Assembly: GCA_000320545.1 (NCBI GenBank)
Contig: ADNK01000063.1
Location: 11,843 to 75,842 of the forward strand
Origin: Bigelowiella natans CCMP2755
Lineage: Eukaryota > Protista > Cercozoa
Length of the DNA: 64,000 nucleotides
Direction of reading: 5' to 3'
Shown here: one piece after another, positions 901-21,717 of the stretch
Layout: every line of letters starts with the position of its first letter
Numbering within the stretch: position 1 is the stretch's first letter
Notes under the pieces: model-generated
The model's database searches: none
Told to the model about the DNA's origin: nothing
The model's input: the letters and a program-made list of their open reading frames with translations, nothing else
Translations under genes and position numbers: made by a program

Positions 901-3724
901 GTGCGGTAACGATCTACTACTGCCGTTGGTGGTAAGAACCCCAGATAGACGACGACGATGATGATGATGATGATGATGATGATGAAAGGGGTATTGATTG
1001 ATGGAAGGACGGTGATGATGACTATAAGAAGCTCTTTCCTCGTTACTTAATTGGAAATAATACTGTGATGAGCGTGATTGACGTTTGTGATGAGATGATG
1101 ACTGATGGTGGTGGCTGCTTCTTCGTGACTCCTGAAGAATGCCTGGATAGTTACCCTTCTCCCTCAAGTATAAGTAAAGGAAGAAGGCGCATGGAAACAG
1201 CAGAAATGGGACCAGAATGTAGCGTAAGATGCCCCCCCCCATGTAAGGAAAGTGTGGAGGCGACAAGAAGGTATATAGTATCGATGTTAACCAGAAACTC
1301 ACACACACCTGAGATCAAACAAGAAGGTATATAGTATCGATGTTTAACCAGACACTCACACACACTCACACACACACACACACCTGAGATCAATACCCCA
1401 ATGTGTCATAATAGTTAACTACTAAATAATAAAAACACACACTATATTATAGTAGACGCATAAGAAGAACAAATAGTACCGCTGTCGAGCCTAAGACTTC
1501 TCTGAGAATGGTTTTCTTGTGCTTACAACTTTTGCAGGCTGCTATATGCCGTGCCGGTATTACACGCTCAATACCATCTACTAATCCATCATCATCATCT
1601 TCTTCTTCTTCTTCCTCGTCGCCGTCATTATTATTATTATCATTATCATTATCACCAACAGCATATAATTCTCCTTGAAGATTGTTCTTATTAGCATCAT
1701 TATCGTTGTGTCTGTTATTTTCCTGATTACTATTACTTGTAACCCTTAGATATCCCTTAATTTCCTCCTCCTCTTCTTCTTCTTCTTCTTCTTCTTCTTC
1801 TTCTTCTCTCTTCTTCCTCTTTGATTCATCATTATCATCATCATCGTCGTCATCAGTCATCAGCACTGTAGTCCTCGCAGCAACATGCTGCTGCTGGTGT
1901 TGTTGCTTCTTCTTGTTCTTTTTCTTCTTCTTTATTCGTGCTGCATTGTAGCAGGTAGGCTTGGAAGTAGAAGAGGGAGGAGAAGGAGGAGATGGTATTG
2001 AATCAACTGCAAGTAGGTGCATATTATTTCCAAGTATCTTGTTACAACAATCACGATTGCAACTTCCTCTTAGATGTGATATGATGAGGAAACGACTAGT
2101 GCCTGATAAGCAATAACAACACAATGTATACACATATATTATGTGATCAACACTACTATCTTTGCTATCTAATGCTACTACTACTATTCATTCCTACATA
2201 GTCAGTTTCTGTGTGCTATGGCACGTACTTTCTATTTAATCTCTTTTCATATAGAATAGTACCCCAATATACGAAGAAGAAGAGTAAGACTCTAAGAGCA
2301 GAAGGTGAAGATATCTTCATGGTAGTAGTAAATACGATTATCATAGCTAGAGGTAGCCTGTAAAAGGAGAGGAGAAAGAAGAAGAGGAAGGGAGATAGTA
2401 CGAGTAGAACAAATTATATCATCTTAGATTTTATAATTTTAGTGGATCATGATCAACATCGTCATCAATGAAGTAGGTGATGTGATCATCAATAATACAC
2501 TATTAAGTACTACTAGTATGTAATAATTATAACCAAAGATCGATTCTCTCAATCATAGCATAGATGTGGCTTGTTTTATCTTTATCCCGAACATCCCATT
2601 CACATGCAAGAGTTGTCCAACTTCTCGTATAAGACGCCTCTGCTTTATTATAGTCTTCTTGTTCTTGTTCTTGTTCTTCTCCCTCAGCCTCATCGATGAT
2701 ATCTTCTTCTTCTTTCCCAGCATTAGTACTAGTACTAGTAGCAGCAGTAGTCGTAGCAGCAAACAGGGCGCCGCATATAAAGGAATTGTTGGAGGGCCGA
2801 TTAGAGAGCACAGACACATAAAGCTCAATACCACAGCGAACACCAACTTCTACGAGGTACAAAATCAGAATTAATACCTGATAATGAGAAATTATTAATT
2901 GATAATGATGATGATGATGATGATGATGATGATGTAATAACAAGTGATTCATCTTACAATAACACTAAGCTGACATTATTAGTGGAGGTTCATAACTCAA
3001 ATCAATTTATAGTTACTACTACTTCATTTTAGACGATGTTGGGGAGAGAAAGAATGAAGTAAAAGTCACGTATCGATTATTATCCAATGAAAATATTATA
3101 ATCATCAATCATTTTTATTATTATTTTTTACACGTATTAGTAGTAGAAACATACCCCAAGAACCCAGACAGAGATGTTAACCCACCAAGTTGCGTCGATT
3201 TTGATCGGTAAATTCAAAATAATAAAAGCATAAACATACGTGGCTCTAAAGACCCATTTATGAGAGTAATTCCAAACGTAGTCACACCATTTCGTGGGGT
3301 TAAACTCCTCGTTGTCTTCGTCATCTTTCTCATGATCAAAAGTTTTGTCCAAAACATGACGGTGATAACGATGAGGGTGATAACGGTGAGGGGTGTAGTC
3401 GTATCTTCCTCCTCTTCTAATTCTTGATCCACTACAATTCACACTTGCAGCAAATGCAGGCTTGTGCACTGTCCTGTATGGTACGTTGCTATCAGTGGTG
3501 GTGGTGGTAAGAAGGAAGATGATAATGATGATCATGATAATTAATACAGTAAATGCTGCTGAGAAGAGAAAGATCCAAACTACTACCCTGTCATTTCAGC
3601 TTCTACACATCGGTAGAAACACAAAGAAGTGTAATGTAAGATGAACACCCATACCTTAATAAATAAACATCAGAGTAGTGAGTGCTAGTACCATGTGCTT
3701 ACTCTTTGAATTTACAAAGGAGAT

Positions 3725-19795: not shown

Positions 19796-20764
19796 ATCTA
19801 GCCATCACTAGATCAGACTTGCGCAGAGCTTGTGATGATGATGTCGCATCATGCATGCAGCTGCATGTGCATGCGCTAGCACGTACTAGAGCATGGCATG
19901 ATCGCATGATCGATGTCTAGATGTGTCTACATCTAGATGTTGCAATGTTGCTACGTGCGTGTCCACACATCTCTAGATCTAGACATCCATGGCGACATGT
20001 CATGCATGCACATCGTAACGCATCACAAACGCACATTCTAGCATTCCTAGATTCTGCAGTGCTAGAGTGTTGTGTGCTGTGTCCGCACAGCTCTAGCTAG
20101 AGCTAGACAGTCCTAGCAGATTAGAGTCCTAGAGTCCAATGGTCCACAATGGTGTCTCTTTGTGCAATCCTATAGCACGCATGCATAAGAGTTCGAGCTC
20201 TATGTTGAATCAACTTCCTGCATGATGCGGATTGCGTTGCGTTGCGTGCCGCCAAGCAATGAATGTGTGCGATGCGCCACACGCTACGCGCGCGCAAATA
20301 CACACACACACACACACACACACACGCGCGGCGCGCGCGCACAGTCTCTCACTATCACAACGGTAGATCATGGATATCAAGTATCAACAACGTGAATCCA
20401 AATGAGAAGTTCGTTTTGGAAGTATCAAGCATGCTCTTCATCTATTTCGATGCCTGATTCAGGACTAACTAATTGACCACGTGCAAAATCACCACTCGCT
20501 CTACCCGAGAGTTAACACTAATTGAAATCGTGACAGAAATTGTGCAAGTCGCACAAAACGTTGTGGATGTTAGAGACGGAATTGAACAAACAAATATAAT
20601 GGGTGTTTTTCATTACGCTGGTCCTACTCGCCCATTCCTCCTTCAGTAGCCGAGCATTAATATTGCTTCTTCTAGTGTTAACCTTCAATTGCTAGATCAT
20701 GTTTTAGTGTGAGGTGCAAAGTCCATGTATTTTGTGCCTCCTATTCATGATCTTCCAGTACGTG

Positions 20765-21143
20765 TTATATTTTCATTTTGGACATTCGCCAGTGCCTCCT
20801 TTTGTAATTGAACCTGAAAAGAAGCGGCATCAGCGTGTTGATTTCCAATATTTTTCTTTCATGATATTACGATGTTCCTTTTCCCTGTTTCATATATTTG
20901 ACTCTTAGCCAGCCAGGAACCTCCCGGTTTTTCTTCAATCGCCTATGTAACTTCATTTTTGTCTTGAAAGTTTTGTGGGCAGCCTGGAATCAATGAAATC
21001 ATGAAGTAAGCATCATCAAAATAAATGCTAAAAATAATAACCTGAATTTGATGGTGGCCAGTTTCGTTGTACATATTGCGGAGTGCCATCCACACCGCAA
21101 CGAGGGTACAGAAAAACAGTGCAAGGCACCTGCGAGGCGCCAT
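20765..21143 (-). CDS. RPL39: 60S ribosomal protein eL39 with N-terminal signal-peptide extension (putatively periplastid-targeted)
   Basis: Exons 21143-21042, 20983-20871 and 20813-20765 (58- and 57-nt GT-AG introns) encode MAPRRCLALFFCTLVAVWMALRNMYNETGHHQIQ-AAHKTFKTKMKLHRRLKKNREVPGWLRVKYMKQGKGTSFNYKRRHWRMSKMKI*. The C-terminal 53 aa match eL39 (HKTF, NR..P.W, KRRHWR). Confidence 0.88.
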
Positions 21144-21717
21144 TACATGTGAGAAATAATTTTTCGTGCGAGCCGTGAGAAAGAAAGAATACTGGAATTC
21201 TCTTCTTCGAAAATATCGGACGACAAGAAGAAGACAAATCAGAAACATTCTCCCGCCAATTTTCTATCAAAGTACTGATGAGCCGATGATGAATCTATTT
21301 GTCAAAAATTCTCTCAGTGAACTTTCTATTGTCTCTAGAGAAGATTTCATTTGGTTTTACACCCTAACGGTTTTCACTTCTGGGATTCCCGATAAATATG
21401 GAACAGAGAAGATCTGAAAGCTTGGTACATTTGTCTCTTGGTTCTGTTTCAGCACGCAGACCTTTGCAGATAGACAGCAGCATGATCCCGATGTCGTAGC
21501 ATCAAAACGACATCTATTTATCAAACGGGAACTAAAGATCTTCACAGATCGATCGGAGGGGAGTGTACCTCCTGTCAACTCTGTCAGCTGTCGTTGTGTA
21601 AGGTGGAGTTGTTGGACGGACTACCAAAAGAGAGGGAACAACTGCGCGCTGAAACTGTACTCCTTCCTTTTCTTAATACGAAATCAAGCATCTGAACTCA
21701 GCTCTAAAAAAGCAGAG

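Follow-up and report, generated by a model that had tools for sequence, protein, structure and literature searches.

The nuclear genome of Bigelowiella natans encodes a divergent eL39 that carries a signal-peptide-like leader, and from its sequence we consider it probable (roughly 70%) that this gene provides eL39 for the endosymbiont-derived 80S ribosome of the cell. It lies within the window analysed here, a stretch of 64,000 nucleotides from contig ADNK01000063.1, where three exons on the minus strand (20765-21143) encode an 87-aa product composed of a 34-aa leader and a divergent 53-aa eL39 (Table 1). An initial annotation of the window had read this gene as a candidate nucleomorph-ribosome protein; all the elements that it described were found at its coordinates on the minus strand, and its reading is supported by the use of the long leader exon, the existence of a leaderless copy elsewhere in the genome, the absence of rpL39 from the list of nucleomorph genes and the conservation of the leader.

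B. natans is a chlorarachniophyte that possesses a nucleomorph and, in its periplastidal compartment (PPC), 80S ribosomes. These PPC-specific 80S ribosomes translate the nucleomorph genes, and factors that are not nucleomorph-encoded come from the host nucleus with a signal peptide and a transit-peptide-like region (PMC6105332, PMC3879969). The literature thus agrees with the setting assumed in the initial annotation, that of a chlorarachniophyte with 80S periplastid ribosomes and imported nucleus-encoded proteins. Among the nucleomorph-encoded ribosomal proteins of B. natans and of three cryptophytes, rpL39 is missing (PMC3879969, Table S2). By this published list rpl39 is absent from the B. 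natans nucleomorph, as the candidate reading had anticipated, although a gene of 51 codons interrupted by introns of 18-21 nt may have escaped annotation. Passages of PMC3879969 and PMC4494063, with Curtis et al. 2012 as cited there, describe some PPC ribosomal proteins as host-nucleus-encoded, and a passage of PMC4494063 citing the same study describes several PPC 60S components as missing from both B. natans genomes. Nucleomorph targeting needs a signal peptide, and the accepted working criterion is 'two copies, one with a signal peptide' (PMC6411479); a published list of 'possibly plastid/PPC' proteins runs to 2,331 entries (PMC5635652). The literature that we searched, outside of which lay the key supplementary PPC lists, contained no relevant paper linking L39 with nucleomorphs. 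Nucleus-encoded PPC ribosomal proteins are already known as a class, and the window eL39 is a well-documented example of it rather than a surprise.

Table 1. Organization of the eL39-leader gene in the window
Feature	Window coordinates	Strand	Description	Basis
5' UTR	21144..21160	-	Short	Transcript contig ends at 21142, 21156 and 21160
Exon 1, coding	21042..21143	-	MAPRRCLALFFCTLVAVWMALRNMYNETGHHQIQ; 34-aa leader, phase 0 at its end	Translation and transcripts
Intron 1	20984..21041	-	58 nt, GT..AG, phase 0, exactly between leader and mature eL39	Transcripts
Exon 2	20871..20983	-	AAHKTFKTKMKLHRRLKKNREVPGWLRVKYMKQGKGT plus 2 bases of a Ser codon; N-terminal two-thirds of eL39, with a 3-aa insertion	Translation, Pfam and alignment
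Intron 2	20814..20870	-	57 nt, GT..AG, phase 2	Transcripts
Exon 3, coding	20765..20813	-	(S)FNYKRRHWRMSKMKI, completing the split Ser codon; stop TAA at 20765-20767	Translation and transcripts
3' UTR	20450..20764	-	Contigs unbroken to 20450; X1 contig extends ~91 nt further; X21 raw reads pile up	Transcripts

The frame of exon 2 contains an in-frame TGA at 20990-20992, two codons 5' of the splice acceptor, and no ATG-only first exon (ATG|GT) was found nearby on its 5' side. The start Met must therefore lie in exon 1, as the initial annotation had argued from the stop codon. Its description of that exon, as a basic n-region followed by a hydrophobic core and a short polar linker, was confirmed by the exon-1 translation, as was its placing of the intron exactly between leader and mature protein by the junction seen in transcripts. 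Positions -3 and +4 of the first ATG are a purine and a G, respectively. Joining the three exons gives a translation identical to P0001, an 87-aa EukProt entry (jgi/Bigna1/58927, fgenesh1_kg) that was the sole protein returned by a word search with the open frame containing exon 1; the Bigna1 58927 model of the gene became public with the JGI annotation. A further in-frame ATG, upstream at 21248, would add 35 residues but was rejected as the start since it falls outside all three transcript contigs. Also on the minus strand, within the sequence ATGTAATG, is a one-codon upstream open reading frame (ATG-TAA, at 21146-21148 and 21143-21145) that overlaps the start codon by one base and is probably unused, because it lies merely 8-12 nt from the apparent transcript 5' end. 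Just past the apparent 3' end of the transcript contigs, positions 20300-20340 hold an (AC)n microsatellite and, after it, a (GC)n run.

Four public RNA runs were aligned to positions 20450-21550 of the window. Assembled contigs from three runs belonging to three studies (X1, X2 and X7) each include one record of 656-687 nt over the locus, and all three skip exactly the two introns of Table 1, the listed contig cuts having been shifted by +2 and +1, which yields CT..AC boundaries for the plus strand and so GT..AG for the minus strand. The 5' ends of the contigs correspond to a 5' UTR of ~13-17 nt. Raw reads of X21 are confined to the 3' end plus a small part of exon 2, and none spans a junction. 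Since the contigs of three studies include exon 1 and splice it exactly, the leader exon belongs to the mature mRNA. The junctions predicted initially are therefore those used, and where transcripts with a short ATG-only first exon would have told against the candidate reading, the contigs have the long leader exon instead. The gene is expressed as a spliced mRNA that encodes the 87-aa precursor; a rare isoform is still compatible with the contigs.

The identity of the mature part is clear from profile and structure-derived sequences alike. Pfam Ribosomal_L39 (PF00832) matches residues 42-86 of P0001 over the full profile (positions 1-42 of 42) at 37.6 bits, where the curated threshold is 21.6; by itself exon 2 reaches 24.8 bits, and the two exons scored 23.1 and 18.5 bits in a genome search. 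In addition, 52 distinct eL39/L39e sequences from the PDB match P0001 end to end at E <= 0.001, with best E-values of 4e-13 to 2e-18. Like canonical eL39, as represented by the B. natans host copy and the chains of solved 80S ribosomes, the window protein is colinear over ~50 residues and has the KTF, PxW[IL]R and KRRHWR motifs. It differs from canonical eL39 in its added 34-aa leader, in a 3-aa insertion in the TGN loop, in reading NREVP where the canonical protein reads NRPIP, and in ending with KMKI, and the window protein shares only 38% identity with the host copy. The mature part had been called divergent at the outset because of an MKQGKG segment. This segment proves to be a single 3-residue insertion relative to the solved eL39 chains, where the canonical sequence reads TGN, and the divergence extends to the mature part as a whole, which is 38-46% identical to the host copy. 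The mature part has a net charge of +18 with a basic, acid-poor N-terminus, and its C-terminus has no ER-retention motif.

We counted eL39 copies by a six-frame family search of the whole B. natans nuclear genome. A canonical leaderless eL39 was found on another contig (G000:C3317), with 51 aa reading MPSQKTL...KLGL and matches of 50.3 and 30.2 bits. Its exon 1 consists of the ATG only (ccATG|GTtgt), and its two introns, of 58 nt each, are in phase 0 right after the ATG and in phase 2 in the codon before YNAKRRHW; the introns of the window gene occupy the same two sites in the same phases. Weak PF00832 matches on C298, C564 and C3714 were rejected as chance, having stops inside and lacking eL39 motifs. 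By this search the predicted nuclear eL39 genes of B. natans are two and only two, and the C3317 gene is the one for the host cytosol. The window gene is not, then, the only nuclear eL39, an outcome in favour of the initial annotation.

The leader itself is made up of the n-region MAPRR (+2), the h-region CLALFFCTLVAVWMAL and the polar linker RNMYNETGHHQIQ. The h-region spans 16 residues with a mean Kyte-Doolittle hydropathy of 2.49, a value also reached by ~5.5% of random ATG-started open frames in the window (1.3% if a basic start and no acidic residues are required as well), so that taken alone the leader is not compelling. It is more than chance, because the hydrophobic core is conserved in two orthologues. 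Our assignment is feature-based, drawing on hydropathy, charge and conservation, and by these features the leader is signal-peptide-like.

The two orthologues came from an exhaustive HMMER search with P0001, which gave 270 matches at E <= 0.001, only two of them aligning through the leader: P0002, an MMETSP transcript (JGI), and P0003, GAB5364292.1 from Amorphochlora amoebiformis, whose annotation as 'hypothetical protein' can be corrected to eL39. P0001, P0002 and P0003 have in common the motif NREVPxWLRVK (canonical NRPIPQWIR) and the C-terminus K[LM]KI, together with an insertion before FNxKRR that is 3 residues long in P0001 and P0002 and 5 in P0003. Their leader sequences are otherwise unrelated, and yet each has an N-terminal hydrophobic core, LNLILLISLVAILFGSLL in P0002 and WIILVIIAAIFLA followed by KSVASA in P0003. 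Neither P0002 nor P0003 has an internal Met after this core. In the A. amoebiformis genome (BAAHQB010000114.1; L011 3001-5579), a unique GT-AG solution reproduces the P0003 protein from four exons separated by introns of 700, 1243 and 345 nt. A 123-nt exon encodes its 41-aa leader and stops, in phase 0, immediately ahead of ASNKTF; the Ser codon is again split by a phase-2 intron, and one additional intron is specific to the lineage. Since the leader exon and its phase-0 intron are common to B. natans and A. amoebiformis, the exon predates the split of the two. The leader-bearing eL39 is conserved in other chlorarachniophytes, and it is the keeping of a hydrophobic core across three lineages that constitutes the real argument for the leader being functional.

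Further orthologues with a leader were sought by other routes. Word-index searches, run with the mature P0001 sequence or the alignment of the three proteins, returned only P0001 and P0003, and scanning metagenome loci with that alignment yielded 14 of 29-54% identity, which were taken from their low identity to be ordinary eL39 genes and added no leader-bearing orthologue. Other extended eL39 matches were inspected and set aside as ordinary genes whose upstream sequence had been read through by the gene caller, many of which keep a Met before [PS][SA]HKTF.

The leader of P0001 contains in-frame Met residues at positions 19 and 24, and the 5' UTR is only 13-17 nt long, so that a product lacking the leader could arise by leaky scanning. 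The window gene might accordingly encode a specialised host-cytosolic paralogue that starts mainly at Met24 by leaky scanning, or whose hydrophobic N-terminus goes unused, and that joins the host 80S ribosome. Duplicates of ribosomal proteins are common, as the two leaderless copies of eL37 in this genome illustrate. However, the sequence context of the first ATG, with its purine at -3 and G at +4, does not favour skipping it, the divergence of the protein far exceeds that of ordinary cytosolic paralogues, and the hydrophobic core recurs in three orthologues whose leaders are unrelated in sequence, two of which offer no Met after the core. We therefore judge a host-cytosolic role to be very unlikely.

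Other ribosomal proteins of B. natans provide a wider context for a nucleus-encoded PPC eL39. For eL31, eL36 and eL38, which like eL33/L35Ae, eS19 and eL37 are absent from the nucleomorph list, the nuclear genome holds one copy each (G000:C1614, C2608 and C3254; L008-L010), and no PPC version of the three was detectable in the nuclear genome search. These single copies, as predicted from the genome sequence, agree with PMC4494063, which states with reference to Curtis et al. 2012 that neither genome encodes several of the PPC 60S components. eL33/L35Ae, on the other hand, has a second, divergent copy (G000:C3724:40061-40573, plus strand; L018 1144-1638; Pfam 43 bits), with a signal-peptide-like MNKVKCLRTLFFISILIGAFILCCLNG in the open frame ~35 residues before the domain. 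As rpL35A is missing from the nucleomorph list and the frame has this signal-peptide-like start, the second eL33/L35Ae is probably another candidate for the PPC ribosome. A second divergent copy of eS19 was also found (G000:C3671:5437-6018, minus strand), with three exon matches of 38, 28 and 23 bits and a putative upstream leader exon that encodes MYILR, 11 Leu residues and TFDRSISK and ends at a GT (L022 ~1938-2010, minus strand). Not all duplicated ribosomal-protein genes are targeting candidates, since the second of the two eL37 copies (G000:C1631 and C1853; L014 and L015) has an ATG-only exon 1 and is leaderless. Predicted leader-bearing divergent duplicates thus exist for some of the missing proteins and not for all.

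What distinguishes the window eL39 is the shortness of the sequence that follows its hydrophobic core. Only 13-14 residues separate the h-region from mature eL39 in all three orthologues, and in P0001 there are ~8-14 residues between the likely cleavage site and mature eL39, far fewer than in the usual transit-peptide-like region. Because this post-signal stretch is so short, entry of P0001 into the PPC, as opposed to retention in the ER or secretory pathway, is something that we infer. The protein could be a small cationic secretory or secreted protein, an eL39 paralogue with a plain signal peptide that acts extracellularly, inside vesicles or in the ER lumen and has no role in a ribosome. 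A leader resembling a signal peptide alone, with almost no transit-like stretch, is what such a protein would have, and the strong divergence of the mature part, at 38-46% identity to the host copy, would also fit. Yet the residues kept in the three orthologues are the hallmarks of eL39 (KTFK, N, PxWLR and KRRxWR) spread over the full fold, a pattern that fits binding to rRNA, and no ER-retention motif is present at the C-terminus. Moreover, the cell has a compartment that by the published list is without its own rpl39, and eL33, another ribosomal protein, is arranged in the same way. A secretory fate is consequently unlikely in our view, if somewhat less so than a host-cytosolic one.

The leader might, alternatively, act as a full plastid-targeting signal that delivers the protein to the stroma or to some other part of the plastid. 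Against such a destination, the 70S ribosomes of plastids lack a site for eL39, and the presequence beyond the signal peptide is very short. We regard a plastid location as highly improbable, even though plastid and PPC presequences, which both consist of a signal peptide and a transit-like region, are hard to separate in silico (PMC5635652).

A PPC ribosomal role would place the window eL39 alongside proteins already assigned to the PPC or nucleomorph, namely the nucleomorph-targeted histones (Hirakawa et al. 2011), POLD, POLH, RFC1 and RPA1 (Suzuki et al. 2016, PMC5635652) and the predictions of Curtis et al. 2012. As in that set, it is a divergent second copy of a housekeeping protein, is not nucleomorph-encoded, has a putative signal peptide and is accompanied by a leaderless host version. 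GFP spots beside the plastid are the pattern typical of nucleomorph localisation (PMC5635652), and A. amoebiformis is the species that can be transformed. The window eL39 differs from the known set in being a candidate by sequence and in its minimal presequence, in which a distinct transit-like region is invisible, whereas the GFP constructs of PMC5635652 comprised 143-263 N-terminal residues.

The ancestry of the leader-bearing gene was examined in a maximum-likelihood tree of eL39 built from 50 columns, without labelled green-algal or rhizarian sequences. P0001, P0002 and P0003 form a clade with support of 100/98, whose neighbours are the EukProt protein P0011 (100/84; 56% identity) and then a metagenome protein and a protein from Dinoflagellata sp. 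TGD (98/90). In the ESM Atlas, P0011 led to generic eL39 clusters only. In the best tree the leader-bearing clade stands apart from the B. natans host copy, although an AU test of a joint clade gave p = 0.112 with these 50 columns, so that a joint clade is not rejected. The intron sites common to the window gene and the host copy give no verdict on origin either, because they are possibly ancient. The gene may have arisen by endosymbiotic transfer or by retargeting of a host paralogue, between which a tree of 50 columns does not decide; owing to long branches, nucleomorph proteins encoded by the host frequently do not fall with algae in trees (PMC6411479).

The TGD protein offers a parallel in another lineage. 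TGD has a pedinophyte-derived nucleomorph and PPC ribosomes (bioRxiv 10.1101/702274), and its 140-aa eL39 (P0051, EukProt EP00747) begins with the signal peptide MRTQMMRAASMVVLLAFLTQVHS, followed by ~60 residues and then M-PSHKTF, with a domain match of 62 bits. Like the window eL39, it has a clear signal peptide ahead of the ribosomal protein, and it falls in the same supported group of the tree (98/90). In contrast to the window eL39, its leader is 83 aa long with a long post-signal region, the original Met before PSHKTF is kept and the mature part has diverged much less (62 bits, compared with 38). From these features the TGD protein seems to represent an independent instance of an eL39 supplied by the host to a PPC ribosome.

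Taken as the eL39 of the PPC ribosome, the window protein would reach its destination in successive steps. Targeted by its leader, the precursor would enter the ER, which is the outermost of the compartments enclosing the complex plastid, and cleavage of the signal peptide would follow. With its 87 aa the precursor falls short of the length needed for ordinary co-translational SRP targeting, so P0001 would require a post-translational ER route. The short linker and the very basic, acid-poor N-terminus of eL39 might then act together as the transit-peptide-like part in crossing the second membrane into the PPC, after which eL39 would enter the nucleomorph and join pre-60S particles on nucleomorph rRNA. 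The imported protein would in this way replace the rpl39 that the nucleomorph no longer carries. The leader was probably gained through the first exon, either a new one or an extension of the old, with its end in phase 0. Since exon 1 of canonical eL39 consists of the ATG only and is followed by a phase-0 intron, a presequence can be added without touching the mature protein, and the conserved phase-0 intron at the leader boundary fits a gain by this route.

The most interesting aspect of the protein is that its short post-signal stretch implies either a minimal transit-like element or a basic eL39 N-terminus that itself acts as one. We propose, tentatively and as a possibility that is on balance doubtful, that the presequence of P0001 is a natural minimal PPC import signal, consisting of a signal peptide and ~10 residues, with the Lys/Arg-rich N-terminus of eL39 being transit-like. 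If so, P0001 would be the smallest combination of cargo and signal to cross the second plastid membrane of chlorarachniophytes, for which we know of no identified translocon, and would make a handy probe for one.

Chlorarachniophytes maintain two eukaryotic translation systems in each cell, and the nucleomorph encodes the second ribosome only in part. A transcript-supported and conserved leader-bearing eL39 would fix one item in the parts list of the PPC ribosome, and would show a simple route by which a targeting signal can be acquired, through a new first exon. The value of the window eL39 lies in its being a clean and conserved example with an unusually small presequence, which would also make P0001 a very small test cargo for import experiments.
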